Shown here in pieces: positions 2,650 through 63,715 of a stretch of 64,000 nt of DNA (its first letter is position 1; each line of letters starts with the position of its first letter). Position numbers and translations under genes: made by a program. Origin of the DNA: Octopus sinensis. Its lineage: Eukaryota. A model generated the notes under the pieces. That model was not told the DNA's origin. It searched no databases and saw only the letters and a list, made by a program, of their open reading frames with translations. The stretch spans positions 62,372,001-62,436,000 of the forward strand of contig NC_043003.1 of assembly GCF_006345805.1 (NCBI RefSeq). Reading direction: 5' to 3'.

Positions 2650-3440
2650 TATTCATATACAAAATAATGGAAACACCTTAAAATTTCAAACAAATTATTT
2701 TAATATAGGGTAGGACTACCTTTGGAAGTAATTACAGCTTGAATTCTATGAGGTATGGACTTGTACAAAGTTTGAGTTTTTTCCAAAGGAATTTTTATCT
2801 ATTCTTCAGCTAAAACAGTCTCCAGTTCTTATAGTGATGATGGTGAAGGATATCGACTCCTTACCTGTTTTTCTAAAATGCACCATAAATGTTCAATAAT
2901 ACTGAGATCTAAGGACTGTGGTGGCCAGATAAGATGTTCAACTTCACTAGAATGTTCCTCGTGCCATTCAGTGACAATTTTAGCTGTGTGAATTGGTGCA
3001 TGATATTTGGTTTTGTGCAGCTCCTGACAAACAGTTTTTGTGGAAATTAGGAAGCTGAGGGGTTCATTAAGGTCTGCAGTAATTTTGGGAGCAGTACTTT
3101 TGTGTTCCTTTCAAACAATTCGCATAAGAGTCCGACTGTCCCTATCTAAAAGTTTTGACTTTCTTCTGGAGTTTTGTTTTGATGAGGCAGTTTTTTCCTC
3201 TTTTTCAAAGGCTGTCATTACTTTTGAGGCAGTACTTCTTGATACACCAAACAGTTTGGCTGCTTTCATTATGCTAGCACCTGCCATACGAGCACCAACA
3301 ATTTGACCTCTTTGAAAGTCCGATAGAGCTGTCATTTTAATGAATTTTAATTACCTTTTTCTTTCTTTTCTACTATTTTATTCTCTTCTATTTACTCTAT
3401 ATCGTTTCAACATTTCTCCCAGGTGTTACCTATTACAATG
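2650..3440 (-). mobile_element. internally deleted Tc1 (DD34E) transposon
   Basis: N-terminus MTALSDFQRGQIVGARMAGASIMKAAKLFGVSRSTASKV (3335-3111). C-terminus IWPPQSLDLSIIEHLWCILEKQVRSRYP...IQAVITSKGSPTLY*. The two are fused at ...ELHKTKYH|APIHTAK near 3000, removing both catalytic Asp. Degenerate TIR aataatggaaacacc / aataggtaacacc. Confidence 0.9.

Positions 3441-3802: not shown

Positions 3803-3872
<70 letters not shown>
3803..3872. repeat. (TA)n microsatellite
   Basis: Directly visible. Confidence 0.95.
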
Positions 3873-4368: not shown

Positions 4369-5190
4369 CAAGGTGCAGTGGATAAATTGACACCATTTTA
4401 TATTTCTAATTTCATGCATGTGCATTGTTTGTTTTTGTTTTGTCAACTACACAGTATAATGGGTTGGTTGGGCATCGTCTATGAAGAAAACAGCACCATG
4501 ACACAATTCTGCCAGAAATTTGGAAGCAGCATGCTGTACTGCTTGACATTCACATTGGAAACTCGGTACATGTCTGAGGACATGTATCGAGAGTGATAAA
4601 AATCAAACATCCATGGTGTTTGGAGTGATCACCAGTAGTGATGATGTTATGTCTCCATTCATCTTCCCACATGGCTTCACACAGAGGCCTACATCAAGTG
4701 CTTGGAGGAAGTAGTACTGCCCTGGGTGAAGAGAGTGGCTGCTGGAAGATCCTATATCTGGCAACAAGACTCTGCACCATGCTACACAAGTACGAGAACC
4801 CAATCATGGCTGTCAAACAATTTCTGCGACCACATCATCCTTGACATCTGGCCACCTAACTCCTCATATTGCAACCCTATTGATTATTATGTGTGGGTCA
4901 CAATTGAGCAAGAGCCCAATAAAACTCCTTGTAACATCAAAGATTAACTAAAGGCAAGGATTGTGGCAGCATTTACCAACTTAAACAATACCGTCCCGAA
5001 GATTTGCAGGAGATTCCAAAGTTGTCTGTAGGCCCTGATTGAAGCCAATGGCAATTTTGTTGAACAAATTTACTCTTTAGTATTTCAAGTTATTTTTATG
5101 TAGTTTTGGTAAATATATCTTTTAAAATGAGATGTCAGTGTTACTTTCATTTTTGTGTAATTTAGATGACAGTTTATACACTACACCCTG
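4369..5190 (+). mobile_element. internally deleted maT (DD37D) transposon
   Basis: TA-flanked ~26-bp TIRs (caaggtgcagtggataaattgacacc versus reverse complement cagggtgtagtgtataaactgtcatc). Residual transposase ...LEEVVLPWVKRVAAGRSYIWQQDSAP...WPPNSSYCNPIDY, with 37 residues counted between the last two Asp. Confidence 0.88.
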
Positions 5191-8170: not shown

Positions 8171-9144
8171 AAATATATGTAATATATATATGTAATTGAG
8201 AATGCAAGGGCACATATATGTGTGTGCTTTTAGCTGATATATAATGATTAAGACAAGATACATTAATGAAAAATTTGAAAACATTTTGCTCGAAAGAAAT
8301 GTCCTATATTTGTTCTACATGAAGGTACATACACTTCCTTGTCCCTTTCACTGCCAGAAAGAAACAATAATTGCCCCATTGGAAAACCTGCAACTAATGG
8401 CACCGTTGTAAACTAATTGTGCTATAAATGATTTTAAAAATTGAATAAAACTTGTAATTCAGCTACAATTTCCAGTAATATATGCATTTCAAGCCAATCT
8501 ATGTATAACTATAGAACAATGAAGCTTATGCCCTTCATTGCAAAATTAATAATGCAAAGAGTTTTAAAATAATAACTGCTTAATATTTCACCTAATAAAA
8601 TATTTACAATGTGCTATGCTTGCTCGTACAGTAGTTGGTCAAATGATTTCTGACACAATAAATCATATATAGGAAGAATATCTACACACGTGCATGATGC
8701 AAGTAAAAATAACATGATTATACAGCAAGAAGCCATGTCCATACACATATCAAAATACACAATATAAAATGGATTTTCTAACAAGTGCACATTATGTGTG
8801 TTTGTGTATATACATATGTATATGTATGCATGTATGTATGTATGTATGTATGCGTATATAAATATATATATATGAATATGCGCATATTTTTTTATGTACA
8901 CACAAAGGTAGAAAAAAATATTGCAAGATCATTATTAAGAATTCCTATCAAAACTACACATATGTATAACTTTCTTTCTGTCCAAAATGATAAAAGGAAA
9001 ACCTTATACATGCAAAATATGACACCTGAAGGCAATGAGGGAAATCACTGATAAAAAAAAATTATAGAAAAAGCATCTCCAATTAAGATAACTCCAAGAA
9101 CCAACCTATTGATATATATATATATATATATATCATCATGATAT

Positions 9145-9193
<49 letters not shown>

Positions 9194-10084: not shown

Positions 10085-10515
10085 TAGTGCTAGACAAAAT
10101 GCCTCACTGTATGGTCCTTCACAGACTCATTTCAAATCCCACTAGGATCTACTTTGTCTTTCACACCCCACTCCCTGAGTTCATCATCATCATCATCATC
10201 GTTTAACGTCCGTTTTCCATGCTAGCATGGGTTGGACGGTTCAACTGGGGTCTGGGGAGCCAGTAGGCTGTGCCAGGCCCAGTCTGATCTGGCAGTGTTT
10301 CTACAACTGGATGCCCTTCCTAACGCCAACCACTCTGTGAGTGTAGTGGGTGCTTTTTACGTGCCACCTGCACAGGTGCCAGACGAGGCTGGCAAACGGC
10401 CACGATTGAATGGTGCCTTTTACGTGCCACCGGCACAGGTACTGGTATTGATTTAATGAACCATCTCCCTCCTCTAAATATCTAGACTTGTACCTATGTG
10501 AGAGACAATTATTAT
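10085..10515 (+). mobile_element. SINE family C interrupted by an RTE tail
   Basis: Head ttcaaatcccactaggatctactttgtctttca (10133-10165). The SINE resumes at tactggtattgatttaatg...cttgtacctatgtgagagacaattatt after the insert. Confidence 0.6.
10180..10440 (-). mobile_element. RTE LINE 3' tail, relatively young
   Basis: (CAT)n cgtttaacgtccgttttccatgctagcatgggttggacgg... with the repeated tttacgtgccacc(t/g)gcac subunit. CpGs are retained. Confidence 0.85.
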
Positions 10516-15030: not shown

Positions 15031-15198
15031 GGTTATGTGCCTTCCCAGCAGTAAAAATAGAAGCCTGAAAATGCTCCTGGATTGAGGAGCTTTCAGTTAA
15101 ACAGAGAGCGTTTGTGGAATGTGTTCTAAAATGTAAAGGATCAAAAGCAGGTAGCAAGGAATGTTCATGAGATCATTATTCCAAAATACCGCTTGACT

Positions 15199-15396
15199 GG
15201 CCCTCGTGCCGGTGGCACGTAAAAGCACCTGCTACACTCTCAGAGTGGTTGGCGTTAGGAAGGGCATCCAGCTGTAAAAACCCTGCCAGATCAGATTGGA
15301 GTCTGGTGCAGTCATCTGGTTCGCCAGACCTCAGTCAAATCGTCCAACTCATGCTAGCATGGAAAGCGGACGTTAAACGATGGTGATGATGATGAA
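15199..15396 (+). mobile_element. RTE LINE 3' tail, young
   Basis: gccctcgtgccggtggcacgtaaaagcacc...catgctagcatggaaagcggacgttaaacgatggtgatgatgatga. Matches the reverse complement of 43802-44000. Confidence 0.88.
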
Positions 15397-18404: not shown

Positions 18405-18700
18405 CACTTAGCGTCCGTTTTCTATGCTGGCATGGGTTAGACAGTTTAGCTGGAACTGGTAAGCTGGAGAGCTACACCAGTCTCTTTTGGTTTGGTTTCT
18501 ACAGCTAGATGCCCTTCCTAATGCCAAACACTCCATAGAGTGTAGTGGGTATCTTTTACATGTCACTGGCTTGTGTACATTTCATGTATCATTGACACAA
18601 GTGCCTTTTATGTGTCACTGGCATAGGTGCCTTTTACAAGGCACTGGCCACAACTATGATTTCACTTGGTTTGACATGTCTTCTCAAGTACAACAAATAT
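18405..18700 (-). mobile_element. RTE LINE 3' tail (older)
   Basis: ttagcgtccgttttctatgctgggcatgggttagac...gatgcccttcctaatgcc, with repeated gtgccttttta subunits. Confidence 0.7.
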
Positions 18701-19379
18701 CTGAATACTATTGTCATCTGAATACTTTGTCATCAGAGAACACCTCCTCCCTCCCCTTGGACAATGTGTGTTCATAACACACATGAGCTACCAGTGTAAG
18801 GGGACTCTGAAACACTGCAGGATTTCAAACATACTGTATGTCTCCCCAGTGAAAGCTACCCTGTCAGACTGATCACTCTCACAAGAGCACAAGCTGTTGT
18901 TTATAGAAAACAGCAAACAAATTATTTGCTGATGCATGACAATGTCTGCAAAACAGATAATGATACATCTGGTGCATGCAGAACAGTGGAATCCAAACAA
19001 ATCTGGTAGATTTGAATGTGAATATTTGTTCACTGTTGCTTTTGTCATCAAAGAGTACCCCTACCTTTCAGATGGTGTATGTCACAACAGGTTTGTGGGT
19101 CACTGTGGCATTTCGACCTTTTTGTGTGTCTCTTCACTGAAAGCTACCCTGTTTATTGTTTTTTGCCAATAACTATTTCATAATATAAGCAACAACACTG
19201 CTACCAACACCACCACTATCACCATCACTGCCATCACCACCACTACCTTCATGGATACCACCATCATTATCACCATTTCTACTTTCCATGTTCACCTTCA
19301 ATAATCCAGATCCCTTAGCTGATGTAGCCTGTTATTGGGGTGCCACTCTAAATGCTTTCATAGTCAGCCATTGCCACTG

Positions 19380-20823: not shown

Positions 20824-20861
<38 letters not shown>

Positions 20862-20917
20862 ATATTCACATATATACATATATATGTATATACATACATA
20901 TATATATATATACACAC

Positions 20918-20948
<31 letters not shown>

Positions 20949-20959
20949 ATATATATATA

Positions 20960-22420
20960 TTAGTTGAATTGGCCGGTAACACCCAGAAAAGCAGGGGTTA
21001 TTTTCACTTCCCATTACACTGTTTCATGTCCTATCCCACTTCCTGTTCAGTTCCTGTTTTAGTTCTGCTCCCATTCCTATCCCCAATCCTATGTCAATAT
21101 ATAAATTTTAGAATCAGTGTGGTGTAATTAAGCCATAAATATTTTATTAACCTTTATGATAATAGTTTATTGCTAAAAATAGGTATTACAAACTATTATC
21201 ACGATTAGTGAGAGAATAAGGAATGTCCCTATATTATTTTAACAAACGAATATGCATCTGAGTAAAATAAATGATTTGGTCAGTAATACTAGGAAAGATG
21301 GGGGTTATCCTCAGTTCCTGTTTACCATTACACTGTTCCATGTCCTATCCTGCTTCCTGTTCAGTTCCCATCTTTATGCCCAACTTGTCATTTATGGTAA
21401 TAGTTTATTGCTTAAAATAGGTATTACAAGCTAATAATTTGATTAGTGGGTGAATAAGGAATGTCCCTATATTATTTCAACAAGTGAATATGCATCTGAT
21501 TAAAATAAATTAGATAAATAGATAGATTTACAAATACATTGATAAATAGTCTGTGTATTGTAGCTGGCGTTGTCACTTGTCATAGCTTATTGTAGCTGAT
21601 TTGTAAACATGTGCTACAGCCCCCTCCCTAGGGGGGGGGCCCATTATAGATTTTTATTGATATCCAATTCACCTATAATTCAACTGGATATTAGGAACAA
21701 ATAAATAACAAAATCGGATTTAATGTGGAAAATTATTTCAATATACCAAATTTGAAAATTTTGATGTAATTTTAAAATCTCACCAATATGTGACAGCAAC
21801 AGGGAAGACCCTATAAAAGTAGTGATAGACAGTTATAGGACATGACACACACACACATACACACAGATTTACAAATGTACACACAGGTAATCACAAGTTT
21901 GAAATGGTGTATATTAAACATATGTATGTATGTATATGTGTGTGAGTATTTCTTTGAGATGGACAGCAGAAAAGCCACCTACCCCCTCTCTCCTTAAAGC
22001 TACATATTCCTGACACCCACCTTTCTGTGTGTGTGTGTGTGTGTGTGTGGTATCTATGTATTTACGAAAGTATGTATGCAGCATCGTGTGTATATGACAG
22101 CTATATTAACAATAACATCCCATTGCCACCACTGTTCTTATCTTCTCTGATATAAGTCACCCTCACTCTGCCACTACCTTTCCCTCTGACTAATACTTTT
22201 TGCAACCTTCTCATTTTATCATCTAATTCACTCAACACCCCTGGGAAGGAGGGGCACATTATAGATTTTTATCAAAACTCAATTAGCCTGTTATTGAACT
22301 GGATGTTAGTGTATGCAAAATTTCATGAATGTTGGTTTGCTGTTTTAGACACTATGATGGTAACAGGCACACAGACAGTCAGACAGAAATTGCCATTTAC
22401 ATATTAGATACATGCATACA
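20960..22420 (+). mobile_element. Helitron/Helentron-like non-autonomous element with internal duplications
   Basis: Starts tagttgaattggccggtaacaccc. Ends gcaaaatttcatgaatgttgg...gatggtaacaggcacacagacagtcagacagaaattgccatttacatattagat, resembling Lep1/HINE-type 3' ends. Two internal direct duplications and a C-rich/G-rich hairpin near 21630. Confidence 0.5.
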
Positions 22421-28915: not shown

Positions 28916-30297
28916 GTAAGTTCAACATGTATTAATTAAATATCCAGCGTGGAATATTTAAAGGAAAACATCTTTCCATTCTCTCAAAACTTACTTTATT
29001 ATATTTTTGTTATGCCAATATCATTATTGTTAAAACTACCCAAATACATAAACTTATTCCCATCTTTTTATACTTCTTTGAAATGGTAACTGATGCACAC
29101 ACTTACATATTGAAGAAGCTAATGTTAGTTTCAGTAGTTCAGCCTATTTTCTATTAAATAGAACTGTTTGGTCAATGACATTGCCAGGTAACCCCTCAAA
29201 ATAATTGTCCAGGTATTAAAATGTAAAGGACGTCATTCATTAAATATCCTTTGGATTTTATAGGCAATTATTCTGAGAAATTAATAGGCATGATGAAACT
29301 ACATTCAATGTAGCACTTATATTACTTTGTTAATGTCACAAAATGTTGCAGTATATCATGAAGTTAGTTATATGATCTTCCATATGGGATTTACATGGAA
29401 ATTTAATTAGAAGAGCTTGATATACTAGAGACATGCGTTAATCAGATGTGCTTCTCTACAGATAGTGATCTGCAATATTTTTCATTTGAACATTCTTTAA
29501 TGCTTCCCCCTGTCGTACTGAAACCTGCTTGCTTTTCTTCCTAGATAAGAATTCACATAGCAGTTTCCTAGATTGTGCATCCTGCTGCTGCAAAAAAAAA
29601 AAAAAAAAAAGGAACTTCCCAAACACTTGTAAATTTCTTCGCTATTTATACTAGAACATAAATTCAAAAACAGGAAAATAAAAGGGCTCTTTTTCTCAAG
29701 ATTTTCTTAATTTCATTTCTATGATATTAGCAACACTTGTAATTCAAAGCCAATTAATGTGCCTTTAATTTGTGATTCATATTTTTTCTTGTGTGATGTT
29801 CAACAGATTTAAAGAATTCTTATAATGCATTGCAATAAACCTAGTCCTTTTCCAGATATTGCTCCTTATTGCACGATTGTATGAGATTGTACTGCTGTGA
29901 TAGCCATTATCTGAGCTTCAAGAATTTCCATGTTTATGTTATTTTTTGAAAAATTCAGGTTGCAAATTTTCATATTATTGTCTAAAAGGCAATGGCAATC
30001 TAGTTGTTATAACCAAAACTATTATCTTTTGATGAGAGATTAATAATACTGGTCAACTAAATGAAACTTTTTTTAATCATCAGAGTTGCTGATTGACTTT
30101 TCTGGGTTAATTTTTGATACTGATTATGAATCTGAAGTCCGATTTCCTTTATCAGATCACATTTTCATGTTAATGATACCCGCTGTTTTAACTTATAGGA
30201 TATATAAAGCATGTCTATATAAAGTCTATTGAATACAAGATACGATAATTTCATGGCTTTTTATTGTACAAAATGAAAATTATTGTGTACAAATAAG

Positions 30298-31981
30298 TTA
30301 CAATACACTCAAATGCATAACAACTTGAAATCTTTGGGATTTGGACTTTCTATGGTGTTTTGTCTTGGGTTCAGCCCTGTATAACATCCAACAGTAGTCA
30401 GCTAACATTCCTGCATTCCAAAATCCTTGATATCCTTGTTCCAGCAATGCAATACCTTGATGAAAGCGTTCCCCTTGCTCATCAGACACAGCTCCAAGGT
30501 TCTCTGCAAAAAAGTCCAGATGTGGATCAAGGAAATGGACTTTTAGTAACATCCGACAGCCCATTGCAGCATAGGAGTCTAGAAGACATTTCACTCCATT
30601 TCTAAACTCTAGAGATCTCTTGTTGTCTAGGAAATTTTCACAGAGCCATTTGAAGGATTCCCAGGCTTTAAACTCAATCTCATCCAGTGCTGTGAGGAAG
30701 TGGTTGTCCTTCAGGAGTTCTTTTATCTGCGGACCTATGAATACGGCCTCCTTCAGTTTTGCCTCGGTGATTTTTGGAAATTTGGCCTTTACATATTCAA
30801 AACCTTCTGAACTTTTCCTGGCAAGTGTCTTCACAAATTGTTTCATGAGGCCAAGCTTTATTGAAGAGGGGGAAGAAGAACATTTTTGGGGTTTAAATGT
30901 GGCTTACTCTGGACGCTAGAAACTCCTGGCTCATAGGATTTTTGCATTGGCGACTCTGATTGCACATAGTGCTTGTTAGTTGCACGACTGTCCCATAGGC
31001 ATAAAAAGCAACAATATTTCGTGAACCCAGATTGCATTCCAATCACCTTCAAGTCTCCACATATTTTCCAGCTATAGTTTGTGTACTTTATGGCATTGAG
31101 GAGTACTTGCATGTTTTCATAACACTCCTTCATGTGCTCTGAATGTCCTATGGGAATGGATGGTTTCTTATTGCCGTTGTGTAGTATTACTCCCTTGAGG
31201 CTTCTCTTAGATGAATCAATGAATAAGTGCCATTCAGCTGGAACATGCTCTTGGAACAAACAGCAAACTAACTCATCAGTGTTATTACTGAAACAAAGTG
31301 GTCCATCAACAGAGAAGCATGAAGTCAAATCCCTATTTCTCTTCCTGAAACGAGTAATAAGCAGACACTTTTCTTGTAGGCAAGATGCTAATAGTTCAGC
31401 TTTATCCTTCGACAATGAAAAGTCTCTAACTAAATCATTTAACTCTCCTTGAGAAAATTTCTGTGATATGTCTTCATTTTCAATTGTGAAATCTGCATCC
31501 ACTTTGGTGTCTTCCACAGCAGTAGTATTTTCTTCAGGAAATACATCTTTGTCAGACATCTGAAGACCATTTTCTGGTGGTATTGGAATAGGAAGATCAT
31601 CATCGTTGTGTGATACTGGTTTTCTTGCTGATTCCAAGTTGGGATACACAATCTTATGCTGCTCTTCACAGTAAACCCACATACATTAACATTGCAGAAA
31701 TAACAGTCCATGAAATGATCCTTTGGCTCTCTCCATATCATAGGTATTGCAAATGGCATTGCTCTCTTCCTCTTATTTAACCAATCCCTTATTCCATTTG
31801 AACAAGCTGACCAGATGATGTGCAGGGCCCAACTCTTATCTTGATCCCCAAGAAAGCAGCCAAAGTATAACTGGCAGATCTTCTTGATTTCACTTGTGAT
31901 GACACGTTGCTGAGCTTTGGTGGTAAATGAACCACAGACATGACAAAATATATCAGGACTGTTCTTGCAATGCCTTGACAT
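30298..31981 (-). pseudogene. DDE transposase with N-terminal Cys-rich zinc-binding domain, split by two 1-bp deletions
   Basis: Three track ORFs join: MSRHCKNSPDIFCHVCG...WREPKDHFMDCYFC, (frameshift ~31640) HKIVYPNL...LFIDSSK...ICGDLKV...KYCCFLCLWDSR...LLPPL, (frameshift ~30860) IKLGLMKQFVK...HFLDPHLDFFAENLGAVSDEQGERFHQ...DYCW. Putative triad: D(FIDSS), D(GDLK), E(GERF). Confidence 0.92.
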
Positions 31982-32017
31982 CCTGAGTAGAATTTGATGA
32001 TGATGATGACTTGGTAC

Positions 32018-32114
32018 CTTAAAAAGAAAGTAAAATTTATGAAAAGAAAAGATTATGAAAATTTTAAATGATAAAATTAATACAAATAGTTATAAAACAG
32101 AAGTCAGAATCTAC
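32018..32114 (-). other. predicted 97-nt intron in the transposase 5' UTR
   Basis: Minus strand: cag|gtagat ... long U-rich tract ctttctttttaag|gtacc, ending 36 nt upstream of the ATG at 31981. Confidence 0.6.
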
Positions 32115-32614
32115 CTGTATAAGGCATTTATGTGTAGCAATACTGCTGATGGGAGTTATATATCTCTCTTATCTCATCAGAAAAACTGTGCCTGATAGAA
32201 GGAAACCGATTACATTTTTGAAATCTGCAGACAAAACTACATATAAAACACCATATAATATCCCTGATGAAAATTGGCTGTTGACCAGTGTAATGAGTTA
32301 TGTGGCTTGGTAGGTTGGGTAGATCAGCAGGTGGGTTTTCAGATAGGTTTGTAGAGTGGTATTTGGTAGATTTGGCTGCTATTTCAAGTTGGTCATGTAA
32401 TTTCACTGGCTTTTATGTAGTCTGGGACTTTCTATTCTAAGTCATGTTGATTTCAATAAATAGAGTAGCTGCTTCTATTTTTAAAGTACCTCTATATTTT
32501 TGACATGAAAATATTACTATGCCCCTCCCACTTCACTCTCTTGATTTTAAAGTTGTTCCAGTTGCCTTAATAATGGTTTCAAACTTTGGCATGAGGCCAA
32601 CAATTTTAGTGGGG

Positions 32615-33933: not shown

Positions 33934-33936
<3 letters not shown>

Positions 33937-33985
<49 letters not shown>

Positions 33986-33995
33986 TCAATAATAA
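33937..33995. repeat. (AAT)n microsatellite
   Basis: Directly visible. Confidence 0.95.
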
Positions 33996-34917: not shown

Positions 34918-36890
34918 ATGGCTTTTCTTTTAAGTCCATCTAGCTATGTGAGGACTAATATTAGTTTGCGCAAGTTCTGTGCACAGCATCCATTTTTGCT
35001 AGCTGACAAGCATTTGCACAGATCTTCTTTTCAGGTGATGAAAAAAGTTCCACAACTGCCTTCTTATCATCACTTCCAAGTACTCAATCTCAGGGCTACT
35101 ACCATCAATGTTGGCACAATGAAAGGAAGGACTGGGGAGATTATTGAAATGTTGGAGTGACGCCATGTTGATGTGTGTGATGTGCAAGAAGTAAGATGGA
35201 GATGAACCATGGGTAAGAGATAGATTCCTGATGGATAGGAGACAGAGATTCAAATTCTTCTCGGTAGGCAGGAGGGATGGAGTGAATGGTGTAGGCATAT
35301 TATTAGCAGAAAAGAGGTTAGATAAGGTAATTGAGGTAATCAGAGTATCTGACAGGGTAGTTAAGATGAGACTTATCAGAGATAAATTAAGTTACATTTA
35401 TCTCTGCCTATGCTCCTCAATCTGGGATGACTGATGAGCAGAGGGATCGATGATATTAGGTCCTTTTGCAGACTCTCTCAACAACAAATGACAGAAACTT
35501 TGTTATTGTAACTGGTGATTTCAGTGGACATGTTAGACAGCATCCCCATGGATTCCAGGTAATGCTTTAGATAGAAACAGCTACAGAGGTATCAAACTGC
35601 TAGACCAAGTCATGAAAGCTCAATTAATTAGGAATAGAATTAAACTAAATGAGATGCAGTTTGGTTTTGTATCTGGTAAGAGTACCACAGATACCACCTT
35701 CCTAGTGAGACAGCTGTAGGAAAAGTACTTGGCCAAATGTAAGTCATTGTACTTAGCCTTCATCGACCTGGAGAAAGCTTTCAACAGAGTTCCCTACTCT
35801 GTTATATGGTGGTTTCTAAGGAAGTTAGGAGTAGAAGAGTGGCATTTTAGAGCTGGACAAGCCATGTACAGTGGTGTTATCAGTAAGGAGAGAGCTGGCC
35901 ACGAATTCAGTGATGAGTTTAGTGTACAAGTAGGGATTCACCAAGGTTCAGTTCTCAGTCCATTCTTATTCATTATAGTTCTCCAGGCCATAACAGAGGA
36001 ATTCAAAACTGGATACCCAATGAAACTGCTGTATGCTGATAACCTTGCTCTTATTGCAGAATCATTAGCAGAACTGCTGAAGAAATTCCTGGTATGGAAA
36101 CAAAACCTGGAATCAAAAGGCCTTAAAGTTAACCTAGCAAAGACCAAAGTTGTCGTTAGTAAGAAAGAAGATAAAACTCTCTTTCCATCAGGTAAATGGC
36201 CTTGCTCAATATGTAGGAAAGGAGTTGAAAGAAATTCCATTCACTGCACCAAGTGTAAGCTATGGATACATAAGTGGTGCAGTAGAATCATAGGTAGATG
36301 AACAGATAAAGTCATCTTTGTATGTGACAGATGTGCAGGAACAATAAGCACTAAGAGCACACAGGACTTAGTTTCTCTCAAATGCCCAGGAAGCTCTCTT
36401 GAGGTTATAGATAGTCTTTGTTACCTAAGTGACTAAATTAGCAATGGTGGAGGATGCTCTAAAAGTATTGTTTCTCAGATTGAAAGATAGACTATATGGT
36501 GCAAATGGTTATACTCCATGGTAGTGAGACATAGGCTCTGAATGCAGAAGGCATGCATAGACTGGAGAGAAATAAAGGCAGTATGCAACATCAGTGCACA
36601 TATACAGCAAAGTGTAAATGTTTTGAGAGAAAAGTTAGGCATAAGAGGAATCAAATGTAGCATGCAAGAGAGAAGACTATGTTGGTTTGGACATGTGAAG
36701 CATATGAATGAGGACAGCTGTATAAAGAAGTGCTAATCCCTGAAAGCGGATAGTACCAGCAGAAGAGGGAGATCCCAGGAAGACATGGGATGAAGTGGCA
36801 AGGACTGATCTCAGGATGATGGGCCTCATGGAGGAAATGACAATGGTCTGAAATATCTGGCAATAAGAGATTCTTGAGAAGACCTGCCAA
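34918..36890 (+). mobile_element. RTE LINE, 5' end present, internally deleted
   Basis: APE endonuclease N-half (TINVGTMKGR, QEVRW, NGVGILL, SAYAPQ, GDFSGHV) joined at ~35557 directly to the RT (ALDRNSYRGIKLL, FIDLEKAFNRV, HQGSVLSPFLF, YADNLAL), then PHD-like finger and C-terminus. Stops and frameshifts throughout. Confidence 0.92.
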
Positions 36891-43805: not shown

Positions 43806-46766
43806 TCATCATCATCATCATCATCGTTTAACATCCACTTTCTATGCTAGCATGGGTTGGACGATTTGATTGAGGTCTGGTGAACCAGATGGCTGCACCA
43901 GGCTCCAATCTTGATCTGGCAATGTTTCTACAGCTGGATGCTCTTCTTAATGCCGACCACTCCAAGAGTGTAGTGGGTGCTTTTACGTTCCACCGGCATG
44001 AGGGCCACTCAGGCAGTACTGGCAACAGCCATGCTCAAATGGTGTTTTTTTTTTACATGCCACCTGCACCCCAGCACAAGTGCAAGTAAGGTGATGCTGG
44101 TAATGATCAAGCTCAAATGGTGCTTTTTATGTGCCACCAGCACGGATGCCAGTTAGCCCCTCTGGCAATGCTCTTAGTGCTCCACTAGCACGGATGCCAG
44201 TCATCGAATTTGATTTCACTTGCCTCAACAGGTCTTTGCAAGCAGTGTCCAATGAAGGAAAGGTACACATAAGTGGGCTGGTTACACCCCTGGCATAGGC
44301 CACGAGGTTATGGTCTCACTTGGCTTGCCAGGTCTTCTCAAGCACAGCATATTTCCAAAGGTCCCGGTCACTAGTCATTGCCCCGGTGAGTCCTAATGTT
44401 CGAAGGTTGTGCTTCACCACTTCATCCCAGGTTTTCCTGGGTCTACCTCTTCCACAGGTTCCCTCAACGGCTAAGGTGTGACACTTTTTCACATGGCTAT
44501 CCTCATCCATTCTTGCCACATGACTATACTAGTGTAGTTGTCTCTCTTGCACACTACATCTGATGCTTCTTAGGTCCAACTTGTCTCTCAAGGTACTTAC
44601 ACTCTGTCGAGTATGCACACTGACATTACATATCCATCGGATCATACTGGCTTCATTCCTTGTGAGCTTACGCATGTCCTCAGCAGTCGTGGCCCATGTT
44701 TCACCACCATGTAGCATGGATGTTGGCACACATGCATCATACAGTCTACCTTTTACTCTGAGCGAGAGACCCTTTGTTACCAGCAGAGGTAAGAGCACTG
44801 AACTTTTCCCAGGCTATTCTTATACTAGCAGCTACACTTTCAGCACACCATCTCCTGCTACTGACTTGGTCACCTAAATAATGGAAGCTATCAACTACTT
44901 CTAGTTTTTCTCCCTTGAGTGTGACGGAAGTTGTTCTCTGCACATTTTCAGAGCTTATTGCTCCTGAGCATCTGCCACATACAAAAACTATCTTCCCAGT
45001 TAGCCTTCCTTTGATATTGCTGCACCTCGTATGTGTCCATAGCTTACACTGGGTACATCTTATAGAGTTTCTACCTACACCTTTTCTACAAATCGAGAAG
45101 GCCATCTACCTGAAGGGATTTTTGGTTTGCCTGCCTTCCTACTTATTAGGACTTTGGTTTTAGCTAGGTTGACTCTAAGGCCCTTCGGTTCTAATCCTTG
45201 TTTCCACATCTGAAACTTCTCCTCTAGTTCTGATAGTGACTCAGCAATTAGAGCAAGGTCATCATCATAGAGGAGCTCGCAGCGGCATCCTGTCTTGAAT
45301 TCCTCTGTTATTGCCTGGAGGACTATGATAAATAGGAGGGGGCTAAGAACTGAACCTTGGTGAACTCCTACCTCCACCCAGAATTCTTCACTGTACTCGT
45401 TGCTAACCCTCACCTTAATGATAGCATTTCTGTACATGGCTTGCACAGCTCTCACTAACCATTCATCTATCCCTAGTTTTCTCATTGACCACTAGATAAG
45501 GGACCTGAGGACCCTGTCAAAGGCTTTCTCTATGTCAACAAAAGCCAGGTACAGATGTTTATCTTTGGCCAGGTATTTCTCCTGCAGCTGTCTTACCAGA
45601 AATATAGCATCGGTGGTGCTTTTCCCTGGCATGAACCCGAACTGCATCTCATCTAAACTGACTCTTTCCCTAATTAGTTGGGTTATGACTCTCTCCATGA
45701 CCTTCATTACCTGATCTAACAACTTGATACCTCTGTAATTATTTGTATCTAAAGCGTCACCTTTACCTTTGTAGCAGTTGACTTTTATGCTGCTACACCA
45801 GTCATTGAGTATGACTCCTTCGTGTATCACCTCATTAACTATATGGGTGGCTAGGCTATAGCTAACACTGCCAGATATTTTGAGCATCTCTGCAGTGATT
45901 CCTGATGGGCTGGGGGCTTTCCCTGTCTTAATACTCTTAATTGTTTTATCTACCAAGGTACTGTCAACTCGGATAACAGGTCCCCATATTGGGTCAACAT
46001 TCAGCAGACTCTCTTTCTCCCATTCATTTTCTTTATTCAGCATCCTTTCATAGTGGCGTCTCCAAACCTCTCTCTTTGCAGCCTCGTCTAGTGCAAGTGA
46101 ACCATCATCCATGCGAACACATTTTTCTCCTACAACATCAAAATTCTCTCTCACACATTGTCTTGCAACACGAAATACCTTTGGTCCTCATGGTGCAGAA
46201 CATTGGCAAATTTTTCTTATCTGCTTCCCCTCTGGCTAAATAAACCTGCTTCCTAGCTTTCCTTCTGGCAGTCTGATACAATTCCCTGCTACCACCGTTC
46301 TTCTAGTCCTTCCAAGCCTGTTTCTTTTCTCTAATAGCCCTGTCAACAACATTATTCCACCACCATTTTATTTTGGGTCGAGAGGGGACTTTGCACCATC
46401 CACAGATCTGGTCAGTGGTCCTCAGCAGATTGTCCCGTAGAAACCTCCAGTTGTCTTCTACATTGTGTGAAGCTATTTTGTGAAAGGCTTCAAGTAATAT
46501 GTCCCTAAATCTCTGTCCATTGGCAGGATCTTTAAGCTTCCAGACCCATCTCCTCCATGCTGGTTGTCTTCTGGGCATCCACTTAGCCCTGATCCTGAAG
46601 TCACTAACTACCAGTCTATGTTGTGGGGTACATTCTTCACCTGGGAAGGTTTTGGCATTTATAAGCAGCCATCTTTCCCTTTTTCTGGTGAGGATGTAGT
46701 CAATTTAGCTAGTGTGTCTGCCAGAACAGTAAGTGACTAGGTGACTGGCAGGTTTTCTGAAGTTGA
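43802..46766 (-). mobile_element. RTE LINE, 5'-truncated within the endonuclease, ~3 kb
   Basis: HLVTYCSG...IDYIL...QHRLVVSD (APE C-half), KWWWNN, NYRGIKLL, MQFGFMPGKST, FVDIEKAFDRV, HQGSVLSPLLF, YDDDLAL, PHD-like finger, LHGGETW, GRGRPRKTW, stop 44316, ~510-bp 3' UTR and (TGA)n tail. Confidence 0.95.
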
Positions 46767-53189: not shown

Positions 53190-53481
53190 TACATCACATA
53201 CATGCATGTATATATACATACAAACATGCATGCATACATACATTCATGCATACAGACCAACCTACCTACCTATCTACCTACCCACCAACCAACTTATCTA
53301 CCTGCCTACCTACATTTACCCACCTACCAACCAACCTATCAGTCTACCTACCTACATACATACATACATACTTACATACATACAAACATTTATACATACA
53401 TACATACATCACATACATACATACATACACACACATACATACATACATACATACATACATACATACATACATACATACATA
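53190..53481. repeat. (CATA)n/(CCTA)n compound microsatellite
   Basis: Directly visible. It is the source of the HTYI/TYIH track ORFs. Confidence 0.95.
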
Positions 53482-54130
53482 CGTAGGTTATGCATGCGAA
53501 TAGCAGCTGTCCTAAAATGTTATCATGGTACTACCTCCCTATGTGGCATGATGCTGTTGCTAAAACAATTTACAATGCCATCCACAAAAAAAAAACTGTC
53601 CTAAAATAAACTTAGAAAATCTCTCTGTTATGGAATACATTCATAAACACCAACTCAAGGAATACTGGTGGAATATTCCCATCAAAACGTCTTTCAAGTG
53701 TAAGGATAACAGGCCAGATGTTGTTGTTTGGGACAGAGGGGCAAAGGTATGTACCATCATAGTGGTCAGTTGCCCAGCAGATATAAATATCTCTTTGAAA
53801 AAGAGGATATCTATGGACAACTGCTTCGAAACCTCCAGCTTCTATATCCTGACTATGAATTCATATTCATAGCAATAATAATTGGAGCATTAGGTTTTGT
53901 TAGTAAATGCTTAAAGGAAAATCTGGATAAACTGGGATTTTCAGAAAGAAAAAGTGACCAGCTGATTCATAAATTACAAGTATAATATGTGAGCGGAACA
54001 GTTAAAATATGCAAGACTTTTCTCAAGTTCCAAATGTGAATTTGTTTGTGTTAACTACATTCCAAAGATGGAGCCTTGTATCTTTGTTAGAAATTGGCTC
54101 CCTCCTCAATGGAAGATTTATAATAATTAA
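53482..54130 (+). mobile_element. restriction-like-endonuclease non-LTR retrotransposon 3' fragment (R4-related, distinct family)
   Basis: HANSSCPKM...YYLPMWHDAVAKTIYNAI, EYWWNIPIKTSFKCKDNRPDVVVWD...SCPADINI, EKEDIYGQLLRNLQLLYPDY...IIIGALG...GTVKICKTFLKFQM* (stop ~54039). Confidence 0.8.
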
Positions 54131-56691: not shown

Positions 56692-57097
56692 GTCTTGTCA
56701 AGGACAACCTCTTTAGTATCTGTGATATGATCAAATGCACTTAAGCTGTTATACTGTGAAGAGGTTGTTGTCAGGAAGAGCATCCTGCTGCAAAAAATAT
56801 GCAAAAAGAAAAAGAAAAGAGCAGGGAAAATGGAAATTCTGTAAGATAGAGGAGAATTATTAGTAAAGTGAAGGGATTTCGTTAGTACAAGACATTGGAA
56901 ATAATCTGTCTTGTACTAATGAATTCTTCACTTTACTAACAAATTTCCTCTATGTTACATTTCCATTTCCCTGCTCTTTTCTTTTTGCATCCTTTTTACA
57001 GCTTGATGCTCTTCTTCACAACAACTTCTTCACAGTAAAATAGTTTAAGTGCATTTGATCATATCACAGATACTAAAGAGGCTGTGCTCCACAGGAC
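56692..57097. mobile_element. 406-bp foldback element / long-TIR MITE
   Basis: Arms of about 200 bp (56692-56894 and 56907-57097) with a 12-nt loop. TA on both flanks (56690-91, 57098-99). Confidence 0.8.
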
Positions 57098-63399: not shown

Positions 63400-63715
63400 T
63401 CAGTGAAGTCACGCAGCTTTGTGGTTAGGGTATTCAACTCATGATTATAAAGTTATGAATTTGATTCCTGGTGGTGTATTGTGTCCTTAAGCAAGACACT
63501 TTCTCTTATATTGCTCCAGTTCACTCAGCTGGCAAAAATGAGTAGTACCTGTAATTCAAAGGACCAGCCTTGTCACATTCTGTGTCACAGTGAATCTTCC
63601 TGAGAACTATGTTAATGGTATGTGTACCTGTGGAGTGCACTGCTCCTTGCATGTTAATTTCACAAGCAGGTCCCATTTCATTGATAGAATCAACTGAAAT
63701 ACTCATTGTTGTAAA
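63400..63715 (+). mobile_element. CORE-type SINE family D
   Basis: gtgtccttaagcaagacactttc...ctccagttcactcagctggcaaaaatgagtagtacctgtaattcaaagg. Homologous to 39466-39765. Confidence 0.8.

Follow-up and report, generated by a model that had tools for sequence, protein, structure and literature searches.

Chapaev3 DNA transposons are characterized by CAC...GTG termini, a 3-bp TWA target-site duplication, insertion between A and T, and a transposase with the motifs C(2)C, LH, and H(4)H (PMC4079192). Examples of their terminal inverted repeats (TIRs) are CACTGRWAAACA and CACWGSCCAAC, and their open reading frames (ORFs) encode 485-561 residues (PMC3014272). The C(2)C and H(3-4)H motifs are shared by Chapaev, CACTA, Mirage, Transib, and RAG1, in what is called the CMC/CMCT group (PMC12730594), and published work sets Chapaev3 near Transib and RAG1 (PMC4411706, PMC12730594), with Kapitonov and Koonin placing it in a broad Transib superfamily with a shared N-terminal "Chapa" finger (PMC4411706). 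Horizontal transfers of Chapaev3 among animals have also been documented in the literature. Here we describe an element found in a stretch of 64,000 nucleotides (contig NC_043003.1, positions 62,372,001 to 62,436,000; hereafter the window, to which all coordinates refer). The element occupies 30047-32290 on the minus strand (2,244 bp), and with high confidence we take it to be one copy of an autonomous Chapaev3 transposon, complete in length but no longer functional.

Boundaries and family assignment

Both ends of the element can be read directly. On the plus strand the left junction is ...TTAA-TAA followed by TACTGGTCAAC (30044-30057), and the right junction is GTTGACCAGTG followed by TAA-TGAG (32280-32293). 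The TIRs are 11 bp long with one mismatch, CAC at one end now being TAC, and 10 of the 11 positions agree with the published CACWGSCCAAC. A direct repeat of TAA stands on both sides in the context A-TAA...TAA-T, as the first-pass annotation of this DNA had stated in describing a complete, TAA-flanked element. The A-TWA...TWA-T layout recurs in all four other copies compared. Three are from the mantis shrimp Oratosquilla oratoria (loci L001, L004, and L005), each bounded by A-TWA/CACTGGTCAAC...GTTGACTAGTG/TWA-T with duplications of TTA, TAA, and TTA, and the fourth is from the frog Eleutherodactylus, bounded by A-TAA/CACCGGCCAAC...GTTGACCTGTG/TAA-T. The duplication is 3 bp long in five of five copies, the window copy included, and the TWA duplication proposed from the window is thereby confirmed in other genomes. 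The Oratosquilla copies have CAC at both ends and do not carry the C-to-T change of the window copy. Neither a second copy of the terminal repeat nor a paralogous empty site occurs elsewhere in the 64-kb window.

The transposase remains carry, in order, FIDSS, CGDLK, CCFLC, PPL(H), HFLDPH, and SDEQGERFH, all of them invariant or nearly so in 32 relatives; the bracketed His of the LH motif has been destroyed in the window copy by the second of two frameshifts. Residues D260, K316, C336, H382, H491, H496, E510, and E513 are invariant in the family, and D314 and C333 are at least 90% conserved, so that the motif order D...GDLK...CxxC...PLH...HxxxxH...E noticed at first pass is both present and fixed across the family. 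The published Chapaev3 hallmarks, comprising the CAC/GTG ends, the 3-bp TWA duplication, the A and T flanks, and the series D, D, CxxC, LH, HxxxxH, E, are all present, in agreement with the earlier description of a structurally complete Chapaev3-type element. The element is thus of an already-known kind, of which this copy is a further member. It aligns end to end with the shrimp copies at 86.7% nucleotide identity, and since the alignment is with the elements of another animal and stops at the inverted repeats and target site, the match is far beyond chance.

Outside the 5' end, flanking sequences are alike beyond the ATWAT core: the window at 32291-32303 reads CATAACTCATTA up to the element and L005 reads TAACTTCCATTA, with L004 also similar, and BLAST alignments of the window with the L004 and L005 5' flanks run 11-13 nt beyond the element. 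This likeness may reflect either an extended target preference or chance. Membership of the hAT, P, piggyBac, or Tc1 groups was ruled out, no Pfam or structural match to them being found.

The transposase gene and its damage

Read from the minus strand, the gene falls into three reading-frame pieces (Table 1) that together amount to about 555 codons, close to the roughly 550 residues first estimated. Lesions were placed by a five-way DNA alignment of the window, the three Oratosquilla copies, and one metagenome copy. Both of the 1-bp deletions reported at first pass are real; the one at 30862 lies where it had been put, while the one described as near 31640 is at about 31661, some 20 nt away. 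The suspected small in-frame deletion at GDLKVIG^MQSG was also borne out: 12 bp have been lost at about 31041, between GGAATG direct repeats, which shortens the stretch from the second catalytic Asp to the CxxC motif by four residues. Missing from the earlier list were a 15-bp in-frame deletion at about 31360, in the same gene piece, and the loss of the ancestral stop, a TAA at 30327-30325 that is now CAA, so that the frame runs on for nine more codons. The metagenome relative shares what looks like a 3-bp insertion, which is therefore a deletion in the shrimp lineage.

The extent of the damage was gauged from 107 invariant and 80 nearly invariant columns defined on the 32 relatives, with eight intact relatives outside the alignment serving as controls. 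The window copy has changed or lost 12 of the 107 invariant columns (Y36C, P53L, C57W, R200C, R256H, L270I, W352S, R355Q, H382 lost, G421A, G461D, and S487L), against 0-1 in the controls, together with 13 of the 80 nearly invariant ones; C57, now Trp, is a candidate zinc ligand. With two frameshifts, two in-frame deletions, and these 12 residues changed or lost, the window copy cannot make transposase. By analogy with the heptamers of RAG recombination signals, transposase supplied from elsewhere could probably not mobilize the copy either, since the first C of one terminal CAC is now T.

Table 1. Features of the window element, in window coordinates, and of its intact Oratosquilla relatives, in locus coordinates
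Feature	Coordinates	Strand	Remarks
Target-site duplication TAA	30044..30046	.	Preceded by A at 30043
3' terminal inverted repeat	30047..30057	-	TACTGGTCAAC on plus strand; first base mutated C to T
3' subterminal region, four ATCAG/CTGAT motifs	30079..30155	-	37, 47, 78, and 109 nt from 3' end
Gene piece 3 (starts IKLG)	30298..30861	-	HxxxxH (KVHFLDPHLDF), SDEQGERFH; new stop 30300-30298
Frameshift 2, 1-bp deletion in His codon of PPLH motif	30862..30863	-	CTTCA-ATAAAG vs CTTCACATAAAG in relatives
Gene piece 2	30864..31661	-	FIDSS (first catalytic D), CGDLK (second D), CCFLC (CxxC); two in-frame deletions
Frameshift 1, 1-bp deletion	31661..31663 (~31661)	-	AAGAGC-AGCAT vs AAGACTAAGCAT in relatives
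Gene piece 1, N-terminal Cys/His zinc-finger domain (tentatively Chapa type)	31664..31981	-	Carries P53L, C57W
Putative 97-nt intron (GT...AG) in 5' untranslated region	32114-32018	-	CAG/GTAGAT...TTTTTAAG/GT
5' subterminal region, four ATCAG/CTGAT motifs	32146..32268	-	Element positions 23, 95, 111, and 141; all conserved in Oratosquilla
5' terminal inverted repeat	32280..32290	-	CACTGGTCAAC on minus strand
Target-site duplication TAA	32291..32293	.	T follows at 32294
O. oratoria (GCA_046742065.1) copies with intact 560-codon ORFs	L001:2599-4961, L004:9605-11961, L005:9599-11961		

Subterminal motifs, putative intron, and proposed mechanism

The pentamer ATCAG or its complement CTGAT occurs eight times in the terminal 360 nt, where the remainder of the window would predict 0.96 occurrences (P = 7.5e-6). 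On the 3' side the motifs at 37, 78, and 109 nt are kept in Oratosquilla, as are all those on the 5' side, and the positions are partly conserved in the frog copy. One inverted ATCAG pair has a member about 22 nt from one end and the other about 36 nt from the opposite end. The subterminal inverted motifs pointed out at first pass are therefore both enriched and conserved in position, and they are likely to be binding sites of the transposase.

An intron in the 5' untranslated region (UTR) is plausible but unproven. The first 175 nt or so of the 5' UTR are conserved between window and shrimp, up to TACAG/GT in the former and TACAG/GC-AAGT in the latter, after which the interior is unalignable and differs in length between conserved flanks, ending with a pyrimidine run and AG. 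At the homologous place Oratosquilla has CAG/GCAAGT...CTTCAG/GT, a GC-AG arrangement with a GCAAGT donor.

As a member of its family the element would have moved by cut and paste. The transposase, of about 560 residues, would carry a two-zinc Cys/His finger at its N terminus and, after it, a DDE core of the RNase-H type with a CxxC/HxxxxH zinc module inserted in it. This protein would recognize the inverted repeats with their CAC...GTG ends and probably also the ATCAG motifs of the subterminal regions. Excision would be followed by re-insertion at A/TWA/T targets, where a 3-bp staggered cut would give rise to the TAA duplication.

Relatives and intact copies in the mantis shrimp

The joined gene pieces, with X at each frameshift, were used to query a collection of 5.8 billion proteins. 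This search gave 1,727 matches, nearly all of them 552-566 residues long, on contigs of 2-3 kb and without any Pfam domain, and a profile search of 50%-identity representatives gave 24,050 clusters; the family is therefore very large. Named matches came from O. oratoria (82% by BLASTP), Eleutherodactylus coqui (57%), Mythimna loreyi (51%), and aphids. The window element, the shrimp copies, and a copy on metagenome contig JAAUYL010048738.1 are roughly equidistant from one another, with 85-87% nucleotide identity and 0.31-0.54 synonymous substitutions per site (dS), the value between window and Oratosquilla being 0.31. Relatives beyond Oratosquilla and JAAUYL01 reach at most 64% protein and about 71% nucleotide identity, and a metagenome scan found relatives at 60-78% only. 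No collection searched held a relative closer than Oratosquilla; there were no relatives among IMG/VR viral contigs and no significant match among the BFVD viral structures. Under the 80% rule the group looks like a separate family, the named Chapaev3 families having been compared by their hallmarks.

At least five intact 560-residue paralogues are present in O. oratoria, where XP_076043843.1 is an example of an intact transposase, and the three genomic copies are 99.3-99.7% identical over about 2,360 bp. Near-identity of these copies and their intact 560-codon ORFs suggest that the family is probably active now in this species. The L004 copy (protein P0122) has Gln at the otherwise invariant His382 (CAA vs CAC). 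Because intact copies exist in O. oratoria, the reconstruction of an active ancestor that had been suggested for the window copy is unnecessary.

Two records labeled as bacterial also came up in the protein clusters. One, filed under Escherichia coli (MCV5004110.1), is an 87-residue piece of a Chapaev3 transposase of the aphid type, and a reverse transcriptase from a long interspersed nuclear element (LINE), 76% identical to one in the window, is deposited as a protein of a Herbaspirillum metagenome-assembled genome. Both look like animal DNA contaminating bacterial records.

Decay, age, and possible horizontal transfer

The first-pass annotation took this to be a fairly recent invader only a few mutations from intact. 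A stronger form of that idea, in which the element arrived very recently by horizontal transfer from an active source, can draw on its structural completeness, on the mantis-shrimp copies as closest relatives at the identity and dS given above, on the absence of any other repeat common to the window and 51 kb of Oratosquilla DNA, on the difference in observed/expected CpG ratio between the window (0.18) and the Oratosquilla loci (0.46-0.64), and on the documented transfers of Chapaev3. The state of the copy points the other way. The change or loss of 12 of 107 invariant residues and the loss of 9 of the 16 CpGs shared by two relatives (the window keeps seven and has TG or CA at another seven) implies roughly 4-5% of neutral decay since selection ended, more than a few mutations, and none of the collections searched contained a closer relative. 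Such decay, at 2-4e-9 substitutions per site per year, would correspond to a residence of about 10-20 million years, with a wide error. Since it has decayed by about 4-5%, the copy is moderately old, and neither its recency nor its supposed closeness to an intact element is supported, the latter being overstated in view of the two frameshifts, two in-frame deletions, lost stop, and altered invariant residues. We consider a very recent arrival unlikely.

The CpG content tells the same story. The window has 34% G+C, and the ratio in the element (0.23) has nearly equilibrated with that of its host, compared with 0.44 in the shrimp element. The three shrimp loci range from 0.46 to 0.58 overall, with 0.64 for the L001 flanks alone. 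All seven of the CpGs common to the window and metagenome copies survive in the shrimp copy. About half of the CpGs have been lost while the element was resident in a strongly CpG-depleted host genome. As the window and the 51 kb of shrimp DNA have no repeat in common but the element, its host is not O. oratoria itself and is unlikely to be closely related to it. The depletion across the whole window is vertebrate-like; from the CpG counts published for Octopus bimaculoides a ratio of about 0.55 can be derived, far above that of the window.

Horizontal transfer of the element is plausible. For a host that is not a stomatopod, vertical descent would call for a value much higher than dS = 0.31, and transfer would then fit the documented cases in Chapaev3. 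It is possible, and we propose it tentatively, that the window, Oratosquilla, and metagenome copies represent an unnamed Chapaev3 family that has moved horizontally between distant, probably marine, animals and is still transposing in O. oratoria. Should this prove true, the family would offer experimenters a Chapaev3 element that may be active in nature and a tractable RAG1-fold transposase with 3-bp duplications, with which to ask how RAG1-type cleavage evolved. The O. oratoria copies, being apparently active, could be tested for transposition, and they provide one more candidate instance of horizontal transfer in Chapaev3. The window copy alone is a routine transposon fossil whose chief use is in correct repeat annotation.

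Relation to RAG1 and Transib

The first-pass annotation also likened the element to RAG1 and Transib. Comparison of structures supports such a relation. An AlphaFold2 model of the closest intact relative, the shrimp protein, had a mean predicted local distance difference test score (pLDDT) of 82.7 and a predicted template-modelling score of 0.62, and in it D260 closes strand 1 and D314 directly follows strand 4, the canonical positions of the RNase-H fold. When this model was compared with the PDB by Foldseek, the top eight matches were all mouse RAG1 core chains (E 8.4e-6 to 2.7e-4, probability 1.00), with about 550 aligned columns and template-modelling scores of 0.43-0.48. The next matches, at E of 0.03 or above, were generic RNase-H-fold proteins, and no hAT, P, piggyBac, or mariner transposase was among the matches. 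That a Chapaev3 transposase model should match only RAG1 in the PDB in this way is independent support for the published, sequence-based grouping of Chapaev3 with Transib and RAG1.

Sequence comparison gives a different picture. Pfam found no match at all in the window pieces and no RAG1 core in the 32 relatives, of which 12 gave weak zf-AD matches and one RAG1_imp_bd at E = 3.5. Searches of the PDB by phmmer and by profile gave no RAG1 match up to E = 10, and hhalign against verified mouse RAG1 481-1010 gave E = 0.41, which is not significant alone. The hhalign alignment pairs D314, C333, C336, and H382 with mouse RAG1 D708, C727, C730, and H795, and the second D lies 19 residues ahead of CxxC in the family as in mouse RAG1.

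These results bear on whether the element belongs to Transib proper, the direct ancestors of RAG1, rather than to Chapaev3. The exclusive Foldseek match to RAG1 core chains, the CAC...GTG termini, and the drawing of Chapaev3 by Kapitonov and Koonin as a clade of a broad "Transib superfamily" would all suit that assignment. The 5-bp duplication of Transib and RAG1 is absent, however, and there is no significant sequence match to RAG1 or RAG1-like proteins in Pfam or the PDB; the N-terminal finger, moreover, is tentatively of the Chapa type, which is reported as undetected in Transib transposases (2026 preprint). We judge membership of Transib proper to be very improbable. The element is a member of Chapaev3 that, on the predicted fold, is RAG1-like in architecture, and with a 3-bp duplication and no homology at the sequence level the relation is remote and is not Transib membership. 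The analogy with RAG1 drawn at first pass stands, as does the assignment to Chapaev3.

The N-terminal domain was considered separately. It has the conserved pattern C13-x2-C16, H54-x2-C57-x2-C60, H89-x3-C93-x2-C96, and when the N-terminal 106 residues of the window copy were modeled (pLDDT 79.6), the top eight Foldseek matches were all ZAD zinc fingers, with weak E values of 0.14-1.5, probabilities up to 0.96, and root-mean-square deviations of 2.7-3.0 A; no Chapa or RAG1 N-terminal zinc-domain structure was among the matches. The 2026 preprint on Chapa/NZD describes the Chapa and RAG1 N-terminal domains as ZAD-like (ZFa). The N-terminal finger may thus be tentatively regarded, from its modeled fold, as Chapa-like.

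Remaining alternatives and counter-evidence

Two further explanations find very little room. The sequence could be a host gene domesticated from a Chapaev3 transposase, as the lack of in-frame stops and a ratio of nonsynonymous to synonymous substitution (dN/dS) below 1 against its relatives might indicate. That ratio is 0.24 and 0.21 against the two closest lineages and 0.13 between those two, both intact; partitioned by branch, omega is about 0.46 for the window and about 0.13 for the intact lineages. The low overall dN/dS arises because selection acted on the active lineage before insertion. With its two frameshifts, its lost invariant residues, and an inverted-repeat pair and target duplication that are both intact, domestication is scarcely credible. 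Crustacean contamination or an assembly chimera, suggested by a best match in another animal, can be dismissed with similar assurance, as the element sits within 64 kb of continuous sequence in a precise target duplication, shares the CpG depletion of its host, and is only 86.7% identical to the crustacean copies.

The identification as a decayed Chapaev3 element has its own difficulties. Placement among the named Chapaev3 families is by hallmarks and not by a tree, and the coding region is a single exon, unlike those of Merrow and Garfield. Methods that use sequence alone (Pfam, the PDB searches, and hhalign) give no significant link to RAG1 or Transib. The mechanism is drawn from the family, and the cited Chapaev literature reports no biochemically characterized Chapaev transposase. 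Finally, neutral decay of 4-5% should have produced about three in-frame stop codons, yet none is present, which makes the estimate of age a rough one.

Other repeats in the window

A short interspersed repeat is present in at least 6-7 copies (962-1207, 10202-10453, 15171-15383, 18407-18774, 43874-44086, 56867-57040, and 63451-63600). ARAGORN found no tRNA-like head in it, and a protein search with its ORFs gave one meaningless match. A 29-mer of a putative "octopus repeat" matched three of its copies with three mismatches or fewer, none being expected; as a lead to the host this is at odds with the CpG ratio derived for O. bimaculoides. Rfam and tRNA scans gave no matches, and exact look-ups of four ORFs from the window retrieved no record. 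Two decayed fragments of retrotransposons lacking long terminal repeats, at 35720-36298 (plus strand) and 44319-46704 (minus strand), each have a reverse transcriptase followed by a PHD-like Cys/His finger, and the closest database entries reach no more than 50-60% identity, most of them without a name. Remnants of Tc1/mariner-type transposases were recognized by eye from motifs such as WPPQSLDLSIIEHLW and QQDSAPCYTS at 1761-1928 and 2832-3350 (both minus strand) and 4645-4944 (plus strand). Microsatellites lie at 3805-3872, 9112-9183, 20824-20960, 33936-33995, and 53190-53482; three are of the (AT)n type, one is (TAA)20, about 1.6 kb from the element, and one is (TACA)35 with adjoining 24-42-bp repeats.

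Comparison with known systems

The closest described systems are Merrow, Garfield, and Conan (PMC4079192) and Chapaev3-1_AC and Chapaev3-2_AC of Anolis (PMC3014272). These have the same CAC...GTG ends with TIRs of the CACTG..AAC type, the same 3-bp TWA duplication flanked by A and T, and the same C(2)C, LH, and H(4)H motifs, and they share a record of horizontal transfer among animals. They are also alike in size, at 2.2-2.5 kb, with transposases of 556-562 residues in Merrow and Garfield and 561 in Chapaev3-2_AC. A difference lies in gene structure, as the coding sequence of Merrow and Garfield is divided between two exons (78 + 478/484 residues), whereas the window element has one, plus a possible intron in the 5' UTR.

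CACTA/EnSpm and Mirage resemble the element in their CAC termini, 2-3 bp duplications, C(2)C and H(3-4)H motifs (PMC12730594), and subterminal repeated motifs. By comparison, the window element is compact, has a single gene, and belongs to a family found in animals, and in contrast to CACTA it matches no Pfam family, the plant CACTA transposase domains included. With the RAG1 core and Transib the likeness extends to the fold of a core of about 550 residues, as far as the predicted model can be relied upon, to termini that start with CAC, and to the order of the DDE residues, the CxxC/HxxxxH zinc module, and the "ALH/PLH" histidine, while sequence similarity is not significant, the duplication is 3 bp against 5 bp, and the TIR of the window element is 11 bp. 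The N-terminal finger appears to resemble the N-terminal zinc domain of RAG1 and to be unlike anything in Transib (2026 preprint).

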